Assembly (NCBI GenBank): GCA_047495785.1
Contig: JBLDXI010000029.1
Span: forward strand, 372,001-436,000
DNA: 64,000 nt
Source of the DNA: Lepidodermella squamata
Lineage: Eukaryota > Animalia > Gastrotricha
Direction: 5' to 3'
Each line of letters starts with the position of its first letter. Positions within the stretch are counted from its first letter, which is position 1. A program made the position numbers and the translations under genes. The notes beneath the pieces were generated by a model. It saw nothing but the letters and a program-made list of their open reading frames with translations. It made no database searches and was not told the DNA's origin. Below are positions 1,512-37,091 of the stretch, one piece after another.

Positions 1512-2689
1512 ATGGCCAGGCACCTAGCATTTCTAGTGCTTGGCGTATTGACGCCGCAAGTCGCCGGCTTCCCGGCGTTGCAAGATCTGATACCCAATGC
1601 GAGAAATGTCCCGAATCCTTGCAACCGAGCTAAGACCGTGCCAGGCCTCGGGCATGCTAACTTGATCGGCGGCGGCACTTTGAATCCATTTGGCATGGAT
1701 TTCTACCGAAATAATTTCACATGGTCTGTGGTATGCCCGATGGACTCTGACGGCGATGGCATGTCAAACGGCCAGGAATTGGGCGATCCATTATGTGTCT
1801 GGAGACCATTTTTCGGCGTAGACCCAACAATTATGGCTCGTAACGCAATCTCTCATCCTGGAGTCTGTGAACCGATTGATGCACCGACTTGTCAAAGAGT
1901 AAAACTTTTTCAAATGTGAAGAAAATATATCAATTTTGAGTATTGCAGGCTAACACCTTTCTTGACATGAATAAGTGTGCTGACCTTCCATTAGATCCGC
2001 CGATGCCTCCACCGAGGAGACCTCCCCCTCCCCCTCCTCCTCCGCCTCCACCGCCGCCACCGCCCCAGCCAGCAGTCCTAATTCTACCGCCCAACTTCAT
2101 GTTCTGCGCTAACAATGACAAGCCCTTCAAAGTCCCAATCACCCTAGCCGATGCTTACCAATGCGACGCAAATAACCCTTGCCCGACTGGTTATGGCTGC
2201 GTGACTGGCCCTACGGATACTCTCGCATTTTCAGTGTGCTGCCCAGTGTCTCGACAACCGCCGCCTCGATGCCCACCCCCGCCGCCGCCACCACCACCTC
2301 CTCCACCGCCCCCTCCTCCGCGGTTGTCTCTTTTGATCCCGATTTTGGTCGCTAAGCCTGCGACCGCTCCCCCTCCTCCTCCACCACCACCACCCCCGGT
2401 TTTCGTCCTACCTCCCAGCCCTGTGCCCCAGCCACCTCCCCCGCCACCACCGCAGCCGCAAGTCGTCAACCAGTCCCCAGTTGAGTGGTGCGTCCGAGAT
2501 GCGGAGACCGGTCCCTGCGGCAGCATGGTAGTCGCGTGGTACTGGAACCAAGCCGCAGCCCGTTGCTGGCCTTTCGCGTACGGCGGCTGTGTGCGGCTGA
2601 CGAGCGGCGTCATCGCCTACCGCGCGCCTTTCCTAACCCGCGACGACTGCGAATCGACGTGCCAAGCCGTAGCACGGTTGGGCAGATGA
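1512..2689 (+). CDS. Secreted temptin-domain / poly-Pro / Lustrin-type Cys-rich / Kunitz protein (2 exons: 1512-1898, 1949-2689)
   Basis: Signal peptide MARHLAFLVLGVLTPQVAG. Temptin motifs IPN..PNPC, GLGH, LNPFGMDF, CPMDSDGDGMSNGQELGDPLCVW, SHPGVC. A 50-nt GT-AG phase-0 intron (1899-1948) joins ORFs 1386 and 1943 in frame. Then poly-Pro tracts, a 6-Cys module ending in CCP, and a Kunitz domain (C..TGPC..WYWN..CWPFAYGGC..F.TRDDCESTC). Confidence 0.85.
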
Positions 2690-4149: not shown

Positions 4150-4644
4150 ATTTTCAAGAAAATGTGATGTTCATCCCTATTTTTACAAATTCTCGATTTT
4201 ATACATTGTTTTTCATTTCGAAACAAATGAAGTTTGAATGAATTTTAAACCGCCGCCGTTAAAGTCCCCAAACACCCTCGACGTATGCAACCCAGCAAAC
4301 AAAACACAAATTTAAACTGGCTAATTTCCGGTGCACAGAGTCTATTTCACGCATTTCATTAATACAAGCGTATATGGATACTGCCAGTTTATTTATTTTT
4401 TTCGAATGTTGTTGAATGTTGTTGGCGAACAAAAAACGTACCGAATAACCCCGCCGGTTCACGCTACGTAAGTTCGGCAGCTCCACGCAAACACCTGCGC
4501 CCTAAATATAACCTCGAACGTTTTAGCTTTCTGGTCCAACGCATCGATAAGCTACTGTTTCAATTAAAAGCGATTCTAATCGCCATTTCACCTGGAACGT
4601 GCAGCAATTTGGTTAATTGCGTGAAATTCGGAGCAGTCTCGGCC

Positions 4645-7600: not shown

Positions 7601-10600
7601 GATGTGATTTCGGCGAAAAAATTGCCCGGCTCCGAGGCAAATAGCCAAAGTACCGACCCGATTATTGGATATCGAGCTAATTACTACGTCAAGCTTTTCG
7701 ATCGAATTCTTGCACTGCAGACAATGGGTAAATTCTGTTAAAATTATCACAAATTTCATAAATCCTACAGAGATGGAGGCTTGAAATTCTCGAAAAGATG
7801 TTATTTTGATAAAATATTCAAAAAAAATATGTTGAAACGATAATTTGAGGGGTTTTTTCGATGAAAAGTACTACGGAATATTCGGTAATAATATGAATTA
7901 GTGCGGGTATTTCTTCACATCATCTCGGATTATTTCATATTTTTTCAATTTTTCCAGATTTCAATGAGATTAAATCAATGCTGAACAAGCTTATTCTGGG
8001 CGCGATGCGATCGAGTGGCAAATCCGACGTCGCGAATACCTATTCGAACCTGATAACTAGATCAGAAATTGTCGTGCCAACAGAAACGGGTCTGTTCGCC
8101 TCGTTTTCGGCCTCGCTCGCCTCGGTCGTTACGCTTCGCCGCCGTTTTGAAATGACCGCGAATCCTCGCCAAATCAGCGCGTCGTTCCACCCGATTATCG
8201 GTCTGGCCGGTGAAAGCCGTGCCAACATTGAGCTGCCCTTCCTACGACAAGGCCTGGCAATAACTGGGGACCTTAGATTCGAACTGCCTCTCAACGCAAA
8301 GGGCGAAGTCGAGCAGTTGAAATCGGGTGATAAATCGCTGAAAATCACGATCGAACCGCATGATAGGGACCTTGAAATTTTTAAATCTTCAATTTCTACA
8401 GTGGTTTTCGAGGAATCACTCAAGCGTGACCTCGTTCTGCCGCAATCAGTGCAGCGCGACGATAATTCAACCTTCGACAAATTATTGCGTGACGATTTCA
8501 AGAAACCAGAACGAATTCGCGCGATCGGAAATCGATTCGAAAAATCGATTTGTTCATCGCCGTCTCGCTGTTCAATGAAGCGTATCGAAGCTGGGCTGAC
8601 AATGCCATTCTTAGGCTGTAGAATGATATCTGAAGTTATTTACAACGAAAGATCGCCGCCTGTTTTCAGCGGTCCGATGAAATTCCGTTTGGTTCAGAAA
8701 AAATCCGCGGCCGAGCCATTGATTGTCCGAATCCAGGCCAAAACGCTGGAGGACATTACCGCTCAAGATGTCATGACCCGACTGGAGAAAATGACTGGGG
8801 TTAAATTGGGCGACAAATCATTTATGGATTCATTATTGCCGCGAAAAGATCGCTTCACTGCCGACTCGGAATTCGACCAGCCGGAGGACAGTGAGGAGGA
8901 AAATGCCGAAAAACCCGAAAAAACCCGAAACCAGGAAAAAACCGAAAATTCTGAAGAAAAGCCGGAAGAAAGTGAAGCGCCAAAGGCTTCTCATCGCGCC
9001 CTCTCGAAAGAGGCTGAGCAAAGTGAAAATTCAGAAAAAACCGAAAATTCCGATAAACCCGAAAAAACCGATGATTCATCATCCAGCGAGGAGGACAATT
9101 CCGAAAACGAGCAAATTCAACGCGAACGCGACTTCGTTGTTAAAGATGCTCGCGATTTCGATATGAATGAGCTTCGATCGCGTTACATGGGCGATTCTAA
9201 GGTGCGCATGCAGGTCCTCCAGTTGGATGCGAAAGTTGGAAATCGGACGGCGAAATGGGCGCTAAGTGTCACGCGCGGGCCTCGCGTTTTTATTACGCGC
9301 AATTACTTTGAGGTGACACCTTTCACGCAAGTCTACAAGGCACTTTGGGAGACTCTTCTTCCTAGTAAGTTCAATTTTTGTTAGCTTGCTTCACTCTAAA
9401 AATGGACTGTATCATAAAATCTTAAATTAATTAAAGAATAAATTAAACAAAATAGTTTATCTTGGGAATTTTATAAAGTTTAAAATAAATTGAATGTTTG
9501 GATTAAATTTCAAATTTCAAATTTCAAATTCCAAATTTTCAAATTTTAATTTTTAATTTTAGACAAATTTATTAAATGTCCTTTTCCTCTTAGTTGAGAA
9601 AGATATTGGCCACGTGATCCGAACAATCACTCCAGACGACCTGAACTCAGTCACCGACCTGCCTTCGTACCAACTATGGCGCTATGGCAAAAATTTGGAG
9701 AAGCGCATTTCAATCCAACTGAGGGCTCAACCTCGCCGTAAGCAAATCCAGCCAAGCGAATCCAAGGCGGCAGATGACAGTTTCTTCTACCGTATGATGG
9801 ACGAAAACAAACGCGATGATTTGAATGAAATAACGCGCGAAACAATCGCGACTTACAGATCTGCGCTTCAAGCTGTCCCAGAACTTATCCAGAGCTTCGA
9901 ACGCTGCATTTCGCAGGGGAAATTCGGGTTCGATAGTTGCACGGAGACTAAGACTGAATATGTTTATTCATGCTTGGCTGAGCATGTCGGCGAGATTGCG
10001 GCTGAAATGGGCCAGCGAGAGCGTGAACAACTCAGACAAGAGCAAATTGTCAAGGTCGATCGGTGCATTGAGCGAAAATTCACTGATAAGCTGTATTTAC
10101 GCGATATTTCTATCTACATTGCTTATGACCGGGTAAGATTGTTGTCAACTTAGGAATCAAAAATTTAATTTGAAATAAAAAATTAGAAAGCCCCAATTAA
10201 TTAACAGTAATAATTGTGAAATTTTCCAAAATTTTGACTTTGAAAAAATTAAAAATTTACATTTCAAATTTTTTAAATGTCCCAACATCTATTTTAATTA
10301 AATTTGTTCAATTTCAAGAATCCGGTGAATATAATGATGCATGAGATATTAAATTAGAAGAATTCCTTAGAAACACTATTCGAAAAAATCTCAAACAGGG
10401 TAAGCTAGGAATTGTTTTTGTGTTCACGCCCCCACTGATGGGGGTGAGCCGAATCCCGGAGGCACTGCAATACCGGGCCGACTCTTGGGCAGGGTCCAGC
10501 AAGCTGGTGTCACCTGCCCGGCTAGCCAAAAATCGGGCTAATATCGTAGGCCCCACATGGAGGCCGTTGTAGATATTAAACTACAAAGAACAGATACTAC

Positions 10601-13295
10601 ACTTTGATCATAGCCAAAAAGGCCGAGAAGCGATAAAGAAAGGGAGTAGGCCGGAATATTCCGGACCGTGTCTCGGGCTGAGTACACTCTCAACTGGTCA
10701 GTTCTTATGCATATGCTAGCTAATCAAAAAAATTAAAAAATTAAAAATAAATATGTGTCGTATCGCAATGAGCAATTCTTCCAATTGCCGATAGAGATAT
10801 CTCTAACCCCGATCTGCCCAAGATAGCTGCATAGCCTAAAGAGATATCTCTATGGCAATAAATAGTGGTTCATAGAGATATCTCATTGAGCAATAATTTT
10901 ACTACGACACGTGCCGTTTAGGAGACAAGCGTTTAAGCTTTTATAAGTTTTTAATACAAAAAATTTAGAAAACATTTATCAAAGTAGTTTAAATCAGAGA
11001 CCCATATTATAATGCCTAAAGCTTTATTGCCCAAAGATTTAGCGGAGAAGGAGCTGTTCATTAAAGCCTGTAGTGAAAGTGGAAAGGTTGATGGTGTTAC
11101 AGCCGATTGCAAGCACAACCTGAGGCATTTGTTTTGCGTTGTTGGCGGTAAACTGAAGTACCGAGAAGCCGAACAAAAACAAGCCGAAAATTGGCATGTC
11201 CTGGTGATGGACACCTTCTTGGAACGTGCAAAGAAGTACCACACCGAGAATAGCCACGCTGGATATAGCGCCGTAGTAGCCTTTTTTAAGCTTTTTAAGG
11301 AGGACGAAGCTGAAGGGTGCCGTTGCAAGTCTGGGTGCAAGTCAACAACAAAACGTTGCGCATGTCGTAACTGGAAAGTTGGCAAGGTCCTGCAGCCTAT
11401 GAAATGTGGTCCTTCCTGTTTATGCTCAAAAACTAATTTTTGCGAAAACAAGTAGTTGATGTGTTTTTCGACATCTATCGATGAGTTTGAGTAATGAAAA
11501 TGAAGAAGATGTGAATAGAATGATTTATTTTTAATATTTCGTTAATAAACGTCGATATTATGTGTTATTGCTCTAAGAGATATCTCAATCGGCAATAATT
11601 TATTGACAATTTATTAATTTGCTCAAAGGAGGCCCCCTTTAAGCAATTGCTAATAGAGATATCTCTATCGTCAATTGGAGGAAATTGCTCATTGCGATAC
11701 GACATATGCATAACTCAAAAATGTGCGTCAGCCGGGAGTCGAACCCGGATCGGCTGCTTGGAAGGCAACCATGCTGACCGTTACACCACTGACGCCGGAT
11801 GATATCGCGTGCGTTTAATTAGCACTAGCTTCAGACACGCAAAGCCGATAGCAAACCTAGGTTTTTCATTATTAAGGGTCTCTTGCGCAGGCTAAATTGT
11901 GGATTTTATTTATATTATTTGTATTTATATTTATATTAATTTAATTTATTGAGATTCAGTTGAATGAAGTTCTTTATAATTTAGGTTCCCCAGCCGTTGA
12001 ACGATGCTTTTTCAGCCATTTTAAACACCTTCAACGTCCTTCGCCAGGGTCAATTCGAGCCCGCGAATTACCGCCCGGGTCGTTTGGTCGCTAAAGTTTT
12101 GTACTCGGACGACAATCGCCACTTCGACTACATCCTCTACCGCCACAAATACGTCTACAAAGCCTTCAATGTACCATCTTTCATCCCACCACCCAACCGC
12201 GTTTATGGTGTCATGCCGTTATCGGCCTCGTTTCAAGATTTGATCGCTAATGAATACCCGACTATTCAACGCCCGTTTTGCAAATTGTCAATACCTGAAA
12301 TTGCGAAATCAGGCCGGGAAGTGTTTGATAAGGCGTCGTTAAGGACCTTCGATGGCGCCGATTTTGAGGTCGCCCTACCGCAAAAACACCTAGCTATCCT
12401 CGCATCAACTTGCGATCGAAAAATTGATCAAATTATGAAACCCCAGAGCGATCAAACTCCAGTTAATTTTGTAGCGATGGAGCGTGACGGTAATCATGAT
12501 AGGAAGGCAGTTGTGCGTGTCGGAAATGTGTTATATCGAATCGACAATCGCTGCCAGGTCGAAATTTCGAACTTGACTGCGACTGATCTTAATCGTCACA
12601 GTGTTCCGTCCACTTCTGATCAAAGTTTGATCACCCTGCGCAAATTTGAGGACGGCGATTGCCACATCTATGAAAAATCCACCGGTATCGAGGTTTATTT
12701 TGACGGCCATGATATCAAGGTTATAACTGGCCGATTGAGACTTCGTTCCGCCTCACTGAACTGTGGATTATGTTCGGATTTGAACGCCGATTTAAAGGCA
12801 AGAAATGAGGTGAATGATCCGGTCATTCGTCGTAGCAGGGTGGATCAATCGGTTTCGCGATATTGCCCGGCTCTAAATAATGAGAATGGCTACACTCAGC
12901 GAGAAGATGATGATGACTTCGAACAGACGGCTGAGAAACAGGGATGGAAATCCGATGACTGTAATTTGATCTTCAAAACTAATGTTGAGATCAAATCGGA
13001 ATCAAAGCGAATCTGCTTTTCGAGCAACGCTATTCCGGCTTGTCCGAGCAAGGTAATATATGTGTAAATATTCAAAACAATCCGTAAATTCTTAAAATTT
13101 CAGTGCCGCCCGATCAAAACTCGACTGGAAAGCGTTGACATGACCTGCTTGGACGATACGGCGGAAGCTCGCGAACTGGCTCGCCGCATTGCGCTGTCAG
13201 ATAACGGTCTGAATTTCGGCCTTTTACGCATCTATGCTCACCCGAGCATGGTCACCGGGCCTTATCAGGTGCCAATTGGTTGCGAACGAATTTAA
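4645..13295 (+). CDS. Vtg: Vitellogenin / large lipid transfer protein, ~1859 aa (exons 4645-4753, 5050-6139, 6388-6562, 6728-7727, 7958-9364, 9594-10132, 11985-13052, 13104-13295)
   Basis: Signal-peptide exon MSNKALRACFLVALIICQIIVAAMA. LPD_N motifs KEYVYDYET, WSLNLKKGLLQLLQL, E.SPIGTCDTLY, ALAAVGNAG, VRIAAY, E.SSNVASFVRSHL. VWD motifs LRTFDG and CGLCSD. Vtg-type C-terminus ICFS..IPAC..C..MTC..VPIGC. All seven introns are GT-AG with consistent phases. Confidence 0.9.
10441..10634 (-). ncRNA. RNU2: U2 spliceosomal snRNA gene (antisense, in vitellogenin intron 6)
   Basis: Minus strand reads ATCGCTTCTCGGCCTTTTTGGCTATGATCAAAGTGTAGTATCTGTTCTT..., with branch-site recognition sequence GTAGTA, Sm site GATTTTTGG and stem-loop IV loop ATTGCAGT. 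About 194 nt; 3' end approximate. Confidence 0.95.
10756..11704 (+). mobile_element. Non-autonomous Ginger2-like DNA transposon (949 bp)
   Basis: ~50-bp TIRs TGTCGTATCGCAATGAGCAATT...AGAGATATCTCTA. TGT..ACA termini, 4-bp TSD TATG (10752-10755 / 11705-11708), and repeated subterminal palindrome AGAGATATCTC. Confidence 0.85.
11012..11455 (+). CDS. Internally deleted transposase remnant: partial integrase Zn-finger (H-x4-H-x-G) fused to a CXC Cys cluster; no DDE core
   Basis: YHTENSHAG followed shortly by GCRCKSGCKSTTKRCACR...CGPSCLC...CENK; lies entirely between the TIRs. Confidence 0.7.
   Translation: MPKALLPKDLAEKELFIKACSESGKVDGVTADCKHNLRHLFCVVGGKLKYREAEQKQAENWHVLVMDTFLERAKKYHTENSHAGYSAVVAFFKLFKEDEAEGCRCKSGCKSTTKRCACRNWKVGKVLQPMKCGPSCLCSKTNFCENK
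11724..11795 (-). tRNA. tRNA-Gly-TCC: tRNA-Gly (TCC)
   Basis: GCGTCAGTGGTGTAACGGTCAGCATGGTTGCCTTCCAAGCAGCCGATCCGGGTTCGACTCCCGGCTGACGCA. Perfect 7-bp acceptor stem, anticodon loop CTTCCAA, GTTCGA T-loop, and a T5 terminator just downstream. Confidence 0.96.
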
Positions 13296-13656: not shown

Positions 13657-16600
13657 TCAAGTTTGAGCATTCGAGCGTGAAGTGTTAGGTTCCAATTGGA
13701 AGAGATTCACTCGTGAAGATGAGTCACCCTGCTGCTGGTTAGTACGACTCGTCGAGATCGGAGTTGTACTAGCTGCTATTGGGCTCAAGGCTCGATTCGC
13801 TTCGTTGCTATTGTTATTATTAATCATATTATTATCGCCAGTCGAGCTGTTGGCCGCCGGTTGTTTTCGCGTTTTAAACACCTTGCGACGCTGATCTTCA
13901 GTTGCTGTTACGTAATTAGCCGGGAAATAGCCGCGTTCTTCGGCACCCGAAGTTACATTCTCGCCCAGCCACCAGCGTTCAGACTCGCGGCATAGCAGGA
14001 CTACTAAATCGCCTTTTCTTAGGGCAAGTTCATCGGCACGCTGAGGTTCGTAATCGTATAATACAAGGTATTTCTGCCGCTTTTTCGTCGGGGCAGATTG
14101 AGGTGGAGCCTGAAAAACGAATAAATTCAAAAGTTTTGAATGCAAAACTCTACATTTTTTAGGTAAGTATCAACATTTTTCTTCCTTGCAATTTTTTAAC
14201 TTGAATTCAAAATGACTCGAAAATTGACAAATCTAAAGCTTAAGTTTAAGGTAAGAGGGAATTAGATTAGATTAATAGAGTAAATATCAAATATTCAAAA
14301 ATTTGTGAAAATTTTACCGTAATTTCCGTTTCGACCTTATCGCCTTCGGCAGAAATATTGAAATTGATGACAGGTTGAGCCTTGAACTGCGTCGAGGTCA
14401 GCATCATCGGGTTAGTCATGGTTCCGGTACCCGGTTGATTGGTCGTAACGGATCCAGCTCCGCCAAATAACAGCGAATCGACAACATTTTGCTTGAACGC
14501 ACTGTTTGGCATCTAAAAACATCATATGTTCAGTAAATCCTGAGTCAGAATTACAAACTACTTACCGTTGCAACAGCACTCAGCGCTCTGTTAACCTTGT
14601 CGACTCGTTTTGTAAAATTTCTCGCAATATGATCGTTAATCGCTTCAATTTCGCGATCCATGTCCATACGATCCGGCTCGAGCAGTTTCAACTTCTGCTC
14701 CGAAATGGTCTCACCCCGCTCGACTCGCTTCAAATACTCGGCTTCAAGCCGCGCCATAGCCTCGTCGAACGTGTACACGTAAACCGGCTGCGAATCGCCG
14801 TAAGAACAAAACGCAACCATGTGGTCATACGGGTGGAATTGAACGTCAGAAACACCTGAGCTGAACGATAATTTATCGTAGATTGTTACCACATCGCCAG
14901 TAACAGCGTTCCAAACAAAACATGTGCCGACTTCAGTCGCGGCTAGGACAAAAGTTCCGCACGGCGTGATGCAAGATCCGATGAAATTTCTCGCATTGAT
15001 ATGGCCCGTGTACAACTGAGTGCAGGCCTCACTCGACAAATCGTACATTCTAAGAGCAGAATCTCGCGTATGAATCAGCAGACGAGTCGTTTGGCTCGGG
15101 CGAATTATTCGATTGATTGGAATTCCGTCGATTTCTTTCGCTCGAACCTTTCGTTCTAAGGTCCAATCTCGGGTGAAACCGCATTTCGGATGATTCGGTT
15201 GAGCTGTTACGTTGCAGTTCCAACTAGCAATTTGGCCTTTCCCGGTCCCGGAGAACAGTAAATGACCAGCTGGGTCGAATTCTAGGCAATTTACCAGCCC
15301 GCCTTGAGCATCAATTTCTTGAAGCAGGAAGCCAGCCCATTTTCGCGTTGTAACCGGCACTCCAAGGCCGTAAATTCGAACTTTACCATCGTGGCATCCT
15401 GTTGCTAGGAGAGACGCGACTTTCGGGTGGAAACGAGCTGCGTAAACAAAAGAAGGATGTGCGAGATTGACATGTTCGGTTGAATTTTCGGTCAGAATCC
15501 AAACTCTAGCTGTTGCGTCTGACGACGCTGATACGAGTTTTGAATCGTCACTCGACCAGTTTAGGTCGTATACCACGTTCATATGCCCGTATAACGATTG
15601 ATTTGCAGTCAGTCGCTTGATATCGTAAATCGCAATTGGATAGTCGCATGACGGTGGGTCGACGCCAGCAGCAGCTAGCTTGAGCCCAGAATTGCTGAAG
15701 CAAAGTCGCGTACAGCCCATTTGGCCGACGAAAACGGTGGAAAGCTGGCGATTAGGTAGTCTGCAAACTTGGCCCGGTAAACGGTTCCAAGCTATCATGT
15801 CTTGGTCGATATTTGCCAGGGCATTTCCCCCAGTCGCAGATTTCAGCAAAGGCTGGCCTGTAACGGATGAAATAAGGCCGAGAGTTTTTGTGAAATTATC
15901 ATTAGAATGAGCTCCGATTTCGCCCTGAGTTGCAATCATCGATCTTGAGGTTGGCAACAGCTGGCTTGGTAATTGAAGTGATTTCAGCGTTACGTATATG
16001 GTTGATGGATATTTAACCCGAGGTGTTGCATTCAACCAAGTTGCAGCTTCACACTGCGTGCCAGCATTTATTACTCGGGGCATTCGATACAGCTGAAGTC
16101 GACATCTTCTTCCAGTATTTAATTGGCCATTTTTCCCAACAATTTTCAGGAAGCCCCAGGCAATTTTTATCCAACCAGCTTCTCTACCATATTGTCGAAT
16201 ATTTTCCGAAATTTCATTCGGAGCCACGTAGTCAATAACTTCGAAAACGACATGCGTCGAAACTGAAGCATCGGAAAAATAGTAAAAATTCTCGTTGAAC
16301 ACAATAGTCTCCTCCCATTTCGGTATGAGGGAGCGATGCTGAGAAAACGAGAACGGCTGAGTTAAAATGGGTAGTACAAAGTCACTTCTAGAATGCTGCG
16401 TTTCGTAAAAAGATGAAACAGGTCGATTTTTATCTAGTTTAGCCAGGTAGTTGTTGATTTTTTGATCGATGATATGAACGCGAACCATGGGGTGACGAAT
16501 ATGGTAGTCAACTTCCAACGGGTCTGTTTGGTGAATCGTAATGCCCAAAACGTGGCCATCATCTTGTCTAACATTGGGTCTCGGCGTCAATTCAGATGTT

Positions 16601-17177
16601 GCGGCTACGGGAAGATTGAGTGGAGGAACGTCACTTCTTTCCTTAGCTTCGGCAGAAACTTCTTGGCCGTGGTCCTTCAGATTTTCAGTGAATTCGTTCG
16701 ATACTTGCAATTCATCAGCCCTCTTCTCCATTTCATCATCGCCTTGAAATGAGAGGTTGACAACTGCAATGCAAAAATCAGGTTATTTTGTAGGCAGTTC
16801 ATGAACTGAGCAATTCACCTGGCCCGCCATCTTTCGCCATTTTTGGTTTGCTATGAAGAATAGATTTCAAAGGAGTTTGAGATATTGAGCTGGGCTCAGA
16901 TGAAGCGACATGTGTCTGAGGTCGGTCATTCATCTCAATTACCTATAATATAGGAGACAGTAAGCTGACAGTAATTCAATCAGATGGCTGATTACTTACT
17001 TCGTCATTTGTTTCCTTGAGCATGCCATCTTTAGCATCGTCTTCTTTCCGCTTTTGTATCCTCTGCATAAGCCGTGTAGCCGCTGACTGAGGCTTTGACG
17101 ATGAGCCTGACGTAATTAGAACAATGATGTACACACCGCATTTGAGGAACACGCCTTTTACCTGAGCCAGTCGCCAT
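13657..17177 (-). CDS. AHI1: Jouberin (C2-like + WD40 + SH3), about 6 exons
   Basis: Motifs HPMVRVHIID, PILTQPF, PKWEETIVFNE, KIAWGFLK, RLQLY, KYPSTIYVTL and WNRLPGQVCRLPN; WD40 repeats (GHMNVVYDLNWS, HPSFVYAARFHP, FHPYDHMVAF); C-terminal SH3 (LYDYEPQRADELAL..WWLG..GYFPANYV). The small 5' exons (17162-17177, ~16999-17107, ~16820-16942) are less certain. Confidence 0.9.
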
Positions 17178-32845: not shown

Positions 32846-35800
32846 TCAGCCTAGGCCGTAGAGCAGGGCGAGGCGTTCGCGCAGCGGCGGCGGAAACTGC
32901 GCCTGGCACCGCGACCAGTTCTCGTCGCCCATCTTCGACTTGAAGCCGTACAAGATGCGCGTGAACAGGTCGCGCAGGTCCTCGCGGGGCGACGCCCACG
33001 AGGCGATCGCGTCGCACAGGTGGATGAAGTCGGCGATGTCGCGGCACGCCGCCTCCGGGTTCTTGATCACCAGCACGCAGATGCCGCGGAACGCAGAGTC
33101 CTTCTCGTCGTTGTCGCGGATGTTGCGCAGCGAGGCGCACCAGTTGCGCAGGAAAGACGCCAGGTAGGGCGCCACGATGTCGGGGCACACCAGGCCGAGT
33201 CGACCAATAGTGATAGCTGGACAAAGGAAAATATACAAAAAATTAAGATAATTCGTCGAAATGTGGAAAAAAGTATATAAAATAGAAAATTCTTATCTTG
33301 AGGATGAAACGATTTTTTCGAATATTTAAAAAATTATCCTCGAGAAATTTTGATCAGAAATTGGAACGTTTGATATCACAGATTATCATAGTGAGCTGAG
33401 TGTGTCATCATTGGAATTTTTTTAATAAAATAACGATCAACTACACTTTCTATTTACCTGTATTTTCGAGAAGAGTTTTCGGAGTAGTTGGCCGGTTGAT
33501 TATTTCGATGAGAGGCGGCAACAACGCGGGAATATAATCGGCCATTCCGCTATCTGAAACCATTGAAAAATCAATTTATAGCCCAATTTCTCAAAAAATT
33601 AATGTGGATAAAAATAAAATAAAAATCTCAGACAGTACGAATACAATAAAATCATAGGCCTTCATAGTGAGCTGAGTAGTAGCATCATAGAAAATCCTAA
33701 AATCTCCAACTACGACAAGGAAGCAACTCACTCATTTTGACGGCAATTTCGCCGATGGCCCACGTCGCATTGTTGCACACTGAGATGTTGACCGGGTCGA
33801 GGTTGATGGCGAGTTTCTGTAGGAAGTCGTGCAGGCATGGCCGGACTCGCTCGAAACACGCTTTCGTTAGATCGCCCAACAACGCAAATGCACTTTGCCG
33901 CACCTCAGCCGTCGGATCCTTTCAATTCAAAATAGTCACAAATTTAATCATCTGATTTGAAACTGGAGAAACCCCAAAAATAAAAGAGTGAAATTGACAA
34001 AATCAGACAGTACGAATACGATAAAATCAGAGATCTTCATAGTGAGCTGAGTAAACATCATTTTTACGAGCCCCGACGTCAAATAAATCAGAGCAGAAAA
34101 TTCATAAATAAAATTGGATTTCTTTGACTTCGAGTTGGCCCTTGTCAATCTTAATTCAGATAAAATCCCTTTAATAACTTACATGCATGCAGTGAAAGAG
34201 CAGGGTTAAAATTTCTGATTGTTCCACCAACTGCTGAATATTCGAACCGAGACCCTCAGCCAGGCCAGATAGCAGATCCAACGCCACGATAATAAAGTCC
34301 TTATCCGGCTGTTCGTACTTGTCCGGATTCGCCATATGCGCCACTCCCTGGTGCTGCGTTTGTTCGATTAGCGAAATGCACCGCTGATAAACGGGCGGGG
34401 CGTAGGGCAGGAAGCCTTCTTTCAACGCCGTAGCTACACTGGATAGGCATTCGAGGAGAGGGAAAAGCGCTTTGTCGTCGTCCTTCAGTTCGTTCCATTT
34501 CTTGATTAATGGCGGCATCATCAACTGAATGAAATCCTGAAACGAAAAATCACGAGAAAATAAGTAAAAATTTGAAAAATTCAAACAAAAAATTGAATAA
34601 GATTCAAAATCAGGAGATCATACTGTCATCAAAAGATCAGGAAGAGAGAGTTGCGATCATCACATATGAAAGCGAAGAACGAGCTTCTATTTCCAGACCA
34701 AATTAGGTATCGATTACTTAATACCGAATAAATACCGTAAATTCAAGGAAAAGACCAAGATTTGGGCCAGGAAATCATATCTTCCAGCCTATTCTTTCTC
34801 CGGGAATAAAATTCATTAAAATTTGGGGTGACAATTTTGCGAATCTTGTCTCGTTCTCAAATTGAACTCTCTCGATGAATTTAGTCTAGAATTGAAACTC
34901 TTCCTTAGCCAAATAAAGATAACGATAAATTTCAAGAAATTCCTTACCTCTCGATTTAGAGCCGGGCCAACGGCATCGGCCAGCGTTCCGACTGCATCGT
35001 ACAAAATCAGTAAATTCTTCTGCTGGTACTTCTCAAAAGCAGCAACAAGCGTCTGTAAGATATCGCCCAGATACGGCACCAAATGCCCGGCTGCCTCTTC
35101 CTCGAGGGTCGCAAAGGCAGAACACGCCGCCTCCTGAACCCGCTTATTCGGGTCCAAAATCCGCCTCAACAGCTCTTGGACCAACGGATTCAGGTACACA
35201 TCGTGCGGCTGCTGGACTATCCAGTGAGCGTAGCGGGATAGAGTCCAGCAGGTTATCGATCGGACCAGAGGCTTCGCGTCGGAGAGGCATTGGATCAAAA
35301 ACGGGACCAGTTGCGGCAGGTGGGGGATCATGCCGCCCACACAACCCTCGGCTATCGCTCCGATAACCAAAATCGCAGACTCGCGGACCTCCCACTTCGG
35401 CGACTCGAGCATTTCGTTGAGGACTGGCAGGATTGTCGGGAGAATCGCCTCGCGGAACACCCCGGATAGCACGTCCAACGCAGCGGCTGAGCATTTTCGA
35501 AGATTCCAGTCTGATAGCGACGATTCGTCGAATTCCTCCTCGCACTCCTCGTCCAGCAGGCCCAACTCGTCGTTCTCGTCGTTTTCCTCCAGATTTTCGA
35601 CGTTAGAATCGAGGGAAGCAGCTGTTTGGCCAATGTTATGAACCTTCGCCCGATGGTACCGGGGTCTGATGTCATTCGGGTTGTCCGCCTGCTTCGAATC
35701 GTCCTCGTCAGAATTGCCATGCAGTAGGATGATGTCAATCTCTGAATAACGCATGTTTTTCACCAATATCGGGATTAGCCGGCCGATGTAAGGGTGAAGG

Positions 35801-37091
35801 ATCGAGCCGCATAGCGGCAGCTGCTCGGCTAGGGCAAGCCAGAACTCGCAGGCCTCGAGGGAGACTGACTCGTCTGAATCACCGGTTCGCTGCATCATGT
35901 ACTCGATAACGCCGTCGATGTGTTGCATCAAGATGTCGGGCTTGATTTCGAGCAACATCACGAAAGAGTGGCACACGTTCTTGCGAACATCTGAATCTTC
36001 ATCGTTCGCAAGGTAGAAAATGTTCTCTAGAAACTGCTCCAAATGCGGCATCAGTGTCTGCGACCGGCTCAACATGAACTGATTCACACAGGCCAGAGCA
36101 TGAGTCCTGTAAAAATAAACACCACAATCAGAGCCGGAATAAATAAATAAAACCCAAACGATCTATTCAAAAGAACGATTCAGAAAAAAATTGGCATCAA
36201 TTTTCGAGAAATCAGTGAGAGAGTTCATAATTCATCACTAAAAAGCTTAGTCAAGATCTGAAATATTTCATCAACTTACTTTATCTTAGCACTCTGATGT
36301 CTGAAGAAGAGGAAAAACTTCGGTAGCAGTATGTTGAGAGGTTTATCTTCCGCAGTCGAGTCGTCTGCGTCGAGTTGAGATGCGCAGTCTTCGCAGATTT
36401 TTCGAAGAGCGCCGAACGCGCCTTCGCAGACGTGGTAATCTGGTGATTCGAGGCATTGGCAAATGAAAGGCAGTAGTTCAGGCCAGTTTCGAAGGTCTCC
36501 ACGCATGACGATAGTTGATATTAAGATGCCGACTGTGGCTCGTATTAGAGGCGACGCGTCTCCAATGCAGTTCAGACATTCTTGCTTGATGTATGAGACA
36601 ACTTCTTGCGGTAAGTGTTCGAAGTGCATTCGAACATTATTTTTTAGTATCAAACCACTGAGCGATCGAGTAGGTTCATCTGCAATAAAATTCAGGATTA
36701 GAAAAGGAATGAATAACACTTTGTAAACCATTTAGTGGCTACCAAATTCAGCAAAGAAATCAGAATCATAAGGATCATAGAGAGAGTTCAAAAACTCATC
36801 ACAAATACGTATAAACTAGAAATCAGTAACAAGATGTGATTAAATACCTTCTGTTTTTAGCCGTGCGAGCACGAACATGAGATAATTGCTAAAATCAGGA
36901 AACCGGTTGAACTCTTCCAATTTCTAATAGCAAAAGCAAAACAGTGAGCAATTTTCAACTCCAGGGCAATGGATAAAAATTACCTGCTGTACACGCCGCT
37001 GAGTCTCGGTGTTTGGAGACTGACTTTCCTTGAGCAACTGGATGATTTGGCCGAGGGCCGCTTGATCTGGCTGCCATTCCATCATCCTCAT
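32846..37091 (-). CDS. TNPO1: Transportin (karyopherin beta-2), 8 coding exons
   Basis: [30 protein letters not shown], acidic loop then [74 protein letters not shown]1 versus TNPO2 cannot be distinguished in an invertebrate. Confidence 0.97.
33350..33416 (-). ncRNA. Box C/D snoRNA: D' guide for 28S (SNORD29/snR71-equivalent site) and D guide complementary to U6 snRNA
   Basis: ATGATGA-CACACTCAGCTCACT-ATGA...TCAAACGTTCCAATTT-CTGA in the last transportin intron. Confidence 0.85.
33624..33693 (-). ncRNA. Box C/D snoRNA, double guide (28S SNORD29- and SNORD41-equivalent sites)
   Basis: ATGATGC-TACTACTCAGCTCACT-ATGA..ATGATT..GTATTCGTACTGT-CTGA; D box ~75 nt from the 3' splice site. Confidence 0.88.
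33998..34066 (-). ncRNA. Box C/D snoRNA, double guide (paralog of 33624-33693)
   Basis: ATGATGT-TTACTCAGCTCACT-ATGA..CTGATT..GTATTCGTACTGT-CTGA, with an AAAA/TTTT terminal stem; ~85 nt from the 3' splice site. Confidence 0.88.
34605..34668 (-). ncRNA. Box C/D snoRNA, SNORD26-like register
   Basis: GTGATGA-TCGCAACTCTCTCTTC-CTGA..TGATGA-CAGTATGATCTC-CTGA; the D' guide pairs with 28S GAAGAGAGAGUU. Confidence 0.88.
36176..36243 (-). ncRNA. Box C/D snoRNA, SNORD81-like register
   Basis: GTGATGA-ATTATGAACTCTCTCA-CTGA..TTGATG..CTGA; ~73 nt from the 3' splice site. Confidence 0.88.
36744..36807 (-). ncRNA. Box C/D snoRNA, SNORD81-like register (paralog)
   Basis: GTGATGA-GTTTTTGAACTCTCTCT-ATGA..ATGATT..CTGA; ~67 nt from the 3' splice site. 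Confidence 0.82.

Follow-up and report, generated by a model that had tools for sequence, protein, structure and literature searches.

Host gene and intronic units

The locus lies within a 64 000-nt stretch of DNA (the window) and holds a transportin gene on the minus strand, with six candidate box C/D snoRNA units, A to F, in introns 2 to 7 and a short inverted relic in intron 4:

32846-37091, minus strand: transportin gene (TNPO1/2 orthologue), eight exons, 916 aa, single stop, at the end
37091-36984, 36923-36848, 36679-36280 and 36106-34948, minus strand: transportin exons 1-4
34536-34183, 33918-33732, 33553-33458 and 33216-32846, minus strand: transportin exons 5-8
36744-36807, minus strand: candidate unit A, intron 2, SNORD81 register; C box GUGAUGA 36802-36796; D' guide 36795-36779; D' AUGA 36778-36775; weak C' AUGAUUC 36769-36763; D box CUGA 36751-36748 (alternative 36763-36760)
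36176-36243, minus strand: candidate unit B, intron 3, SNORD81 register; C box GUGAUGA 36238-36232; D' guide 36231-36216; D' CUGA 36215-36212; C' UUGAUGC 36200-36194; D box 36183-36180
34606-34668, minus strand: candidate unit C, intron 4, SNORD26 register; C box GUGAUGA 34663-34657; D' guide 34656-34641; D' CUGA 34640-34637; C' UUGAUGA 34632-34626; D box 34613-34610
33999-34066, minus strand: candidate unit D, intron 5, dual guide; C box AUGAUGU 34061-34055; D' guide 34054-34041 (SNORD29 type); D' AUGA 34040-34037; C' CUGAUUU 34030-34024; D guide 34023-34007 (SNORD41 type); D box 34006-34003
33624-33693, minus strand: candidate unit E, intron 6, dual guide; C box AUGAUGC 33688-33682; D' guide 33681-33666; D' AUGA 33665-33662; C' AUGAUUU 33655-33649; D guide 33648-33632; D box 33631-33628
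33350-33416, minus strand: candidate unit F, intron 7; C box AUGAUGA 33411-33405; D' guide 33404-33390 (SNORD29 type); D' AUGA 33389-33386; C' GUGAUAU 33379-33373; D guide 33372-33358; D box 33357-33354
34862-34878, plus strand: inverted relic, intron 4; 17-nt antisense-strand copy of the unit A guide and D' (TTGAACTCTCTCGATGA)

The product of the host gene has HEAT_EZ/HEAT domains, as found by domain search, and its best named protein matches are 'Transportin-1'. All seven introns of the gene model are bordered by GT..AG. Two sequence runs were found to contain the locus, both as contigs, one of spliced RNA and one of DNA. Spliced contigs of the RNA run, X1, skip exactly 60, 168, 173, 264 and 178 nt, and this confirmed five of the seven splice junctions exactly (introns 1, 2, 3, 5 and 6); the spliced RNA contigs of the locus are without units C and D. 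A run search with an 80-nt snoRNA sequence gave no match. Named protein matches for the organism are at best only 40–60 % identical, a jouberin-like protein likewise had no near match among named proteins, and in a transportin tree the host protein was placed on a long, poorly placed branch outside the arthropods.

A motif scan of the sense strand found exactly one RUGAUGN C box, with a CUGA D box downstream, in each of introns 2–7, and no C box in intron 1 (60 nt), which bears out an earlier sequence-only reading that every intron of the coding region except the first carries one sense-strand C/D unit. The distance from the start of the C box to the end of the D box was 54–61 nt in all six units. 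From the D box to the 3' splice site the distances for introns 2–7 were, in order, 68, 73, 73, 84, 74 and 137 nt; that of intron 2 becomes 80 nt if the first CUGA is taken instead of the second. Five units thus fall at 68–84 nt, a position typical of splicing-dependent assembly and in agreement with the 67–85 nt previously read for five of them, and unit F is the outlier. The arrangement is that of intron-encoded snoRNAs, with sense orientation, location in spliced introns (five confirmed) and, in five units, a D box within the approximately 60–90 nt upstream of the 3' splice site that is usual for this class. Terminal stems beside the boxes were weak or absent, as RNAduplex pairing of the 12-nt flanks was no better than that of shuffled flanks. 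Such stems are visible only as A-U runs, for example AAAA/UUUU in unit D.

As C-box-like and CUGA motifs are short, we considered whether the six units are chance matches in AT-rich introns that encode nothing functional. The same regular expression matched at only eight further places in the window (128 kb, counting both strands), and none of these eight showed rRNA complementarity, whereas all six intronic units point to known sites. Dinucleotide shuffles of each intron produced a C..D pair of such spacing in 0.2–1.9 % of trials, compared to six of six introns filled in the gene, and none of 2000 shuffle trials had more than two of the six introns occupied. In addition, Rfam E-values reached as low as 1.9e-5. 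Taken together, the shuffles, the pairing with rDNA and the target-less control matches rule out a chance origin, the probability of which we consider negligible.

Predicted rRNA targets

At gathering thresholds, an Rfam scan of the whole window returned only U2 and a tRNA, and no snoRNA; the family matches described here come from an E-value scan and all fall below those thresholds, although their guide and D'/D segments are nearly identical to the family consensus in the alignments. Guide pairing was tested on eukaryotic rDNA from metagenomes, and not on the species' own 28S. Both 3' targets were present in 120 metagenomic eukaryotic rDNA loci, with a spacing of exactly 217 nt in most, and 18 of these loci also contained GAAGAGAGAGTTCAA approximately 2650 nt upstream. 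The eight guides that were assigned form 11–16 bp with this rDNA, each at a known Nm site. Their best matches fell at the assigned sites in all reference rDNAs, with the expected A or U at the fifth position. Taken singly, the matches of 11–12 bp are marginally above those of shuffled guides (reached by 2–32 of 200). For the four remaining D guides (A, B, C and F), complementarity to metagenomic rRNA genes did not exceed that of shuffled guides. Target assignments are based upon the Rfam alignments and rDNA pairing together with the published human targets, namely Am4493 for SNORD29 and Am389 for SNORD26 (PMC13507652), and Um4276 for SNORD41B, the host gene of which is TNPO2 (PMC1636440).

GAAGAGAGAGUUCAA is complementary to the D' guides of introns 2 and 3, which lie in the SNORD81 register, and to that of intron 4, which pairs 2 nt further upstream, in the SNORD26 register. 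The predicted target of units A and B is the second A of GAAGAGA*GAGUUCAA (the equivalent of human Am391, SNORD81), and that of unit C is the A two nucleotides upstream (Am389, SNORD26); on rDNA locus L061 the fifth positions fall at index 5369 for A/B and 5367 for C, 2 nt apart. The unit A guide formed 16 contiguous pairs with rDNA AGAGAGAGTTCAAGAG, equalled by none of 200 shuffles, that of unit B 11 bp with GAGAGAGTTCA of the metagenomic rDNA, and that of unit C 12 bp with GAAGAGAGAGTT (equalled by 2 of 200 shuffles). The guide and D' of unit B (AUGAACUCUCUCACUGA) are in a register identical to the Rfam SNORD81 consensus UUGAACUCUCUCACUGA. Unit C matched SNORD81 at 29.6 bits (E = 0.012, with a 9-nt gap), short of the gathering score of 50; units A and B had no Rfam match in the E-value scan, and SNORD26 was matched by none of the units. 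Unit A is the least regular of the three, as its D' is off consensus (AUGA), its C' is weak and its D box has two candidates.

The D' guides of introns 5–7 pair with GUGAGCUGGGU, the SNORD29/snR71 site, over 11 bp each, one G-U pair included, so that the predicted target of units D, E and F is GUGA*GCUGGGU in helix 93 (Am4493, SNORD29; yeast snR71). The D guides of introns 5 and 6 are the SNORD41 guide and would direct modification at CAGU*ACGAAUAC, 217 nt upstream of the helix 93 site (Um4276, SNORD41). Unit D paired over 11 bp at GTGA*GCTGGGT and 12 bp at CAGT*ACGAATAC, and unit E over 11 and 14 bp at its two sites. Against Rfam, unit D scored 37.4 bits for SNORD41 (E = 8e-5) and 23 bits for SNORD29; unit E scored 39.2 bits for SNORD29 (E = 1.9e-5) and 21.8 bits for SNORD41, the latter a partial match over the D guide; unit F scored 26.5 bits for SNORD29 (E = 0.041). 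The 11 bp of the unit F D' guide were equalled by 6 of 200 shuffles. Its D guide, for which the best rRNA match was equalled by 122 of 200 shuffles, has 11 contiguous Watson–Crick pairs with AAATTGGAACG of U6 snRNA.

The placement by the sequence-only reading of two units in the SNORD81 register and one in the SNORD26 register was reproduced, with the 2-nt shift, on real (metagenomic) eukaryotic rDNA, and its three units at the SNORD29/snR71 site were upheld by Rfam alignments and rDNA pairing for introns 5–7. All three of its sites held; the SNORD41 D guide had been missed, and since the units of introns 5 and 6 are dual guides, the cluster covers four sites and not three.

Comparison with other species and snoRNA systems

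A related species, L001, has 85 % transportin protein identity and carries only single-guide SNORD41-like units in this gene, two in number, with D boxes approximately 70 and 83 nt from the 3' splice sites. No A/B/C-type unit was found in the L001 transportin gene, and no target was found for the D' of its SNORD41-like copies; polymorphisms between L001 and L002 are confined to the target-less D' spacer of the unit. Among intronic sequence, only the SNORD41 guide/D-box segment (unit E) is conserved with L001. A bird TNPO2 locus contains two SNORD41-type units, one scoring 37.4 bits as unit D does. No SNORD41-, SNORD29- or SNORD81-like guide was found in or near transportin in three arthropod-like contigs, a tick, a spider, a sponge and a rotifer (the rotifer 3' end is missing), and no transportin snoRNA host was found in the Drosophila papers searched.

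The D guide GUAUUCGUACUG of units D and E, taken together with its CUGA, shows no difference from the SNORD41 (U41; RF00588) family consensus, and both the predicted target (the Um4276 equivalent) and the host gene family are common to vertebrate TNPO2 and this gene. Units D (37.4 bits) and E (21.8, partial) are nevertheless under the gathering score of 41, as is the bird TNPO2 copy, and the host introns differ, the SNORD41-type units lying after approximately aa 699 and 761 here and at approximately aa 323–399 and 523 in bird TNPO2. Units D and E also differ in what appears from sequence to be an added functional D' guide; to our knowledge, vertebrate SNORD41 has a D guide only. The guide listed for it is the D guide, 14 nt at the 3' side (PMC1636440).

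The resemblance of units D–F to SNORD29 (U29; RF00070) and yeast snR71 lies in the D' guide AGCUCACU and the unusual AUGA that forms its D' box (consensus GCUCACUaUGA), and in the target, the A of GUGA*GCUGGG (Am4493, PMC13507652). None of the three scores (39.2, 26.5 and 23 bits) reaches the gathering score, 48; the host codes for a protein, transportin, unlike the non-coding SNHG1; and in two copies the guide is joined to a SNORD41-type D guide. SNORD81 is located in GAS5. As for SNORD81 (RF00136) and SNORD26, GAAGAGAGAGUUCAA is paired in two registers 2 nt apart, comparable to human Am391/Am389, and the guide and D' of unit B equal the SNORD81 consensus; here, however, one protein-coding host carries all three units, compared to GAS5 and, for SNORD26, SNHG1 (PMC13507652). 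The wider arrangement recalls Drosophila Uhg and vertebrate SNHG1/GAS5, with a single sense unit in each intron, set approximately 70 nt before the 3' splice site, and paralogues in tandem from intron to intron, but differs in its conserved protein-coding host, in six consecutive introns being filled and in the mixing of two target groups.

Discussion

Our analysis indicates that introns 2–7 very probably encode one box C/D snoRNA each, which would be freed once the intron is spliced out and is predicted to direct 2'-O-methylation of 28S by fibrillarin. From the sequence, we infer that the small RNAs accumulate and that the methylations take place; the six-unit arrangement in transportin is real but ordinary. 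In the proposed mechanism, transportin pre-mRNA would be transcribed and Snu13, Nop56, Nop58 and fibrillarin would assemble on the C/D kink-turn while the spliceosome holds the intron, a step expected to be favoured with the D box approximately 70 nt short of the 3' splice site. The spliced-out lariat would then be debranched and exonucleases would trim it down to a protected RNA of approximately 60–70 nt, the guide upstream of D' or D of which would pair with pre-rRNA, so that the nucleotide facing the fifth guide position is methylated.

It is also conceivable, and in our view unlikely, that the units are decaying pseudo-snoRNA copies derived from intragenic duplication, of which none or only a minority still give stable, functional RNPs. 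The weak terminal stems, the degenerate D'/C' and ambiguous D box of unit A, and the distance of unit F from its 3' splice site, together with its loss of the SNORD41 guide, would fit such decay. The boxless relic of intron 4 shows that copies do decay here, two of the sites are served by redundant copies, and many annotated Drosophila snoRNA copies have been argued to be unexpressed (10.1101/2023.05.25.542231). However, the C and D boxes are intact in all six units, the guides are aligned precisely on known methylation sites, and the SNORD41 guide has been kept across species when the surrounding intron has not. Polymorphisms also avoid unit B, as the second DNA source showed no differences within the unit and four in the 36 nt upstream (P = 0.011), and the SNORD26 register is served in this gene by unit C alone.

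The suggestion that the guides form two paralogue groups stood in part. There are two target groups, units D and E, 86 % identical over 63 nt, are clear recent duplicates, and F has their 5' half in common; A, B and C have few features in common other than those dictated by their shared target. The accompanying proposal, that intron-to-intron duplication with a shift of guide register gave rise to the adjacent specificities, was not established, given how barely alike A, B and C are and that L001 is without such units. The specificities equivalent to Am389 and Am391 may instead represent two ancient, distinct snoRNA families that came to share one host, with no register shift here, and we consider the evidence for and against this to be evenly balanced. 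Vertebrates have each register as a separate family in a different host gene, so that the shift may far predate this gene arrangement; units A and B have little in common with C apart from the target-imposed CUCUCUC core and the GUGAUGA C box; and the L001 transportin gene has none of the three. Conversely, units B and C share CUGAU...UUGAUG D'/C' features, GUGAUGA is found in all of units A–C compared to AUGAUG in D–F, and intragenic copying is demonstrably active here, as seen in the likeness of D to E and in the unit A relic.

The recurrence of SNORD41 in the transportin of vertebrates and of this lineage bears on possible ancient snoRNA–host associations. SNORD41 could have resided in transportin since before the split between this lineage and vertebrates, hopping between introns as these were gained and lost, with the SNORD29 guide gained here and unit F re-aimed at U6, a scenario that we put forward tentatively and regard as rather doubtful. 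If true, functions that are separate in vertebrates and yeast, those of SNORD29 and SNORD41, were merged here, and this would be a rare documented deep snoRNA–host association in which guide swapping can be seen under way. As the host introns are not the same and the unit is missing from several other animals, the association may or may not be ancient; a published survey across eukaryote supergroups identified no intronic snoRNA with a conserved position (PMC3511168).

Our study adds an annotation for six snoRNA genes that had none, together with four predicted rRNA methylation sites, in an invertebrate lineage that has been little sampled. The cluster is also a compact natural series for guide evolution, comprising the recent duplicates D and E, unit F with its D guide replaced, the register-shifted guides of A/B and C, a boxless relic and single-guide counterparts in a related species. 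The relic itself is 94 % complementary to 36775-36791 (inverted repeat I1; second repeat I2), with no C or D box around it, and as read on the pre-mRNA it is a mimic of the 28S target.

Box C/D units in the transportin gene

Our study identified six units (A to F, in introns 2 to 7 respectively) in a minus-strand transportin gene, which on sequence grounds are predicted to be genuine members, described here for the first time, of known snoRNA families, arranged in a well-known intronic layout. There are two modest extras: two of the units are predicted to be dual guides (SNORD29/SNORD41), and SNORD41 recurs in a gene for transportin. The eight exons of the gene model, bounded by GT..AG, join into a single open frame of 916 aa, and the closest named proteins to the exon 4 product were Transportin-1.

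Exons of the transportin gene model
37091-36984, minus strand, exon 1
36923-36848, minus strand, exon 2
36679-36280, minus strand, exon 3
36106-34948, minus strand, exon 4, with HEAT_EZ/HEAT repeats
34536-34183, minus strand, exon 5
33918-33732, minus strand, exon 6
33553-33458, minus strand, exon 7
33216-32846, minus strand, exon 8 (last)

Contigs of run X1, which match this locus, behave as spliced RNA: they lack introns 1, 2, 3, 5 and 6 exactly as predicted (60, 168, 173, 264 and 178 nt, respectively), the skipped segments being bounded by CT..AC on the plus strand. Introns 4 and 7 were bridged by none of the X1 contigs listed. The last exon has a G+C content of 66 %; the other seven have 41-56 % and the introns 27-35 %.

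Introns 2 to 7 each contain exactly one sense-strand RUGAUGN, with a CUGA ending 54-61 nt from the start of the C box, and the sense-strand motif search found no such pair in intron 1 (60 nt), in agreement with the sequence-only reading, which had described one unit in every intron but the first. The intron sequence 3' of the D box measures 68, 73, 73, 84, 74 and 137 nt in introns 2 to 7; the first five values (68-84 nt) lie within the 67-85 nt previously claimed for five introns. Intron 2 has two CUGA motifs, the first of which would place the D box 80 nt from the intron end; the second was taken as the D box of unit A because the first leaves an RNA of only ~50 nt. When the introns were dinucleotide-shuffled, a C..D pair arose by chance at a rate of 0.2-1.9 % per intron, and three or more introns were occupied in 0 of 2000 trials. 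The same expression gave eight further matches over 128 kb (both strands), none of which had rRNA complementarity. Taken together, this indicates that the six-intron observation is real and far above chance. The terminal stems of the units were no better than random.

Family assignment and predicted targets

An Rfam E-value scan, in which every score fell under the gathering score, matched SNORD29 to unit E (39.2 bits, E=1.9e-5), unit F (26.5 bits) and unit D (23 bits), SNORD41 to unit D (37.4 bits, E=8e-5) and the 3' half of unit E (21.8 bits), and SNORD81 to unit C (29.6 bits). The alignments were nearly identical precisely across guide-plus-box segments: the SNORD29 guide, in which the D' box is the unusual AUGA (AGCUCACUAUGA), the SNORD41 guide with its D box (GUAUUCGUACUG.CUGA) and the CUCUCU..CUGA segment of SNORD81. 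Units D and E are therefore predicted dual guides of SNORD29/SNORD41 type. The three SNORD29-type guides reported earlier were borne out by both Rfam and pairing, but the SNORD41 element of units D and E had been overlooked.

Targets were tested on metagenomic eukaryotic rDNA, not the species' own rRNA. A search of metagenome contigs for both 3' targets, at the distance expected between them, gave at least 120 eukaryotic rDNA loci, in at least 79 of which the two predicted modified nucleotides were exactly 217 nt apart. At least 18 loci carrying both 3' targets had GAAGAGAGAGTTCAA ~2650 nt upstream; the rDNA of other lineages had variants (GAAAAGAGAGTT) instead. Guides were then anchored at the D' or D box and scanned against nine complete metagenomic rDNA units, alongside 200 shuffled guides. 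The D' guide of unit A formed 16 contiguous pairs (matched by 0 of 200 shuffled guides), that of unit C 12 as its best match (equalled by 2 of 200) and that of unit B 11 as its best match. Those of units D, E and F formed 11 pairs (one G-U) at GTGA*GCTGGGT (the asterisk follows the predicted methylated nucleotide), which upholds the assignment of three guides to the SNORD29/snR71 site. The D guides of units D and E paired at CAGT*ACGAATAC over 12 and 14 pairs, respectively. Single matches of 11-12 bp are only modestly above shuffled guides; the weight of the assignment lies in eight guides all falling at established methylation sites and in the correct register.

Guide position five of unit C is opposite the A in GAAGA*, and that of units A and B opposite an A two nucleotides downstream, an offset that agrees with Am391 as the human site of SNORD81. 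One guide in the SNORD26 register and two in the shifted SNORD81 register, as first read, were thus recovered on metagenomic rDNA. In human 28S, SNORD26 directs Am389 and SNORD29 Am4493 (PMC13507652), and SNORD41B directs Um4276 (PMC1636440).

In the nine rDNA units, no match over background was seen for the D guide of unit A, B, C or F. The D guide of unit F (33358-33372, minus strand) forms 11 contiguous Watson-Crick pairs, from the D box, with U6 AAATTGGAACG, the paired segment being AAAUUGGAACG of a U6 that is not this species'. To our knowledge, this predicted site is not among the known U6 methylations.

Duplication within the gene

Units D and E match each other at 86 % over 63 nt, and unit F has its 5' half in common with them; units A and B are 85 % identical across the 20-nt guide region. 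What unit C shares is chiefly the CUCUCUC core, together with a GUGAUGA C box and a UUGAUG C' box. Intron 4 holds a further copy:

34862-34878, plus strand, inverted, boxless 17-nt copy of the unit A guide and D' box

This copy, probably a relic of inverted duplication, reads UCAUCGAGAGAGUUCAA on the pre-mRNA and mimics the 28S target of units A to C; a decoy role would be pure speculation. The resemblances between units and the inverted copy indicate that intragenic copying has been active in this gene. The intron-to-intron duplication proposed earlier therefore stands as to copying (units D and E, inverted relic), but its register shift in situ was not established: the 2-nt shift between units A/B and C may have arisen in this gene, or may have been inherited from ancient separate families.

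Comparison with other transportin genes

The transportin gene of a related species on metagenomic contig L001 (9060-12320, plus strand; exon 4 identity 85 %) has four introns only, those equivalent to 1, 4 and 6 having been lost. In the counterparts of introns 5 and 7 there is a C/D unit whose D guide is again that of SNORD41, at a distance from the 3' splice site of ~83 and ~70 nt, respectively. These two are the long introns of the gene (~173-187 nt); the counterparts of introns 2 and 3 measure only ~50 nt and contain no snoRNA. The SNORD41 guide/D-box segments were the sole intronic stretches that aligned with L001. The SNORD41 guide is absent from unit F, whereas the L001 unit at the orthologous position retains it. 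No D' target was found for the L001 units, and no unit of A/B/C type in the L001 gene. In an L001-like haplotype pair, in-unit substitutions fell within the target-less spacer, with none in the boxes or D guide. A second DNA source of the species studied here showed 4 differences in the 36 nt of intron preceding unit B and 0 in the 72 nt made up of the unit and its 3' flank (P=0.011).

The TNPO2 locus of a bird (Aegithalos caudatus, L129) contains a SNORD41-type unit at 4551-4617 (plus strand; 37.4 bits, the score of unit D and under the Rfam gathering score) and a second at ~2270-2340 (plus strand) in a different intron, adjoining an assembly gap. This accords with the literature listing of human SNORD41B in host TNPO2 (PMC1636440). 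The bird snoRNA introns, however, interrupt the region that is the uninterrupted exon 4 here, and the bird intron that corresponds in position to intron 5 contains no unit; the host is therefore common to both, but the intron is different. No such unit was found in the transportin of three arthropod-like contigs, a tick, a spider and a sponge, or in what remained of the gene on a rotifer contig missing its 3' part. Ancient residence of SNORD41 in transportin, with intragenic hopping and many losses, is possible, as is independent capture by transportin genes; the transportin of this organism forms a long, unresolved branch in the transportin tree. A survey reported no positionally conserved snoRNA across eukaryote supergroups (PMC3511168).

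Other genes in the window

A 726-aa open frame (14554-16731, minus strand) encodes a jouberin/AHI1-like WD40 protein, whose top named relatives (vertebrates, amphioxus, priapulid and molluscs) are only 40-43 % identical, which suggests that the protein collection includes no closely related annotated organism. A full-length U2 snRNA gene (10439-10634, minus strand; 160.8 bits) lies ~1.1 kb from a tRNA gene on the same strand (11724-11795; 62.6 bits).
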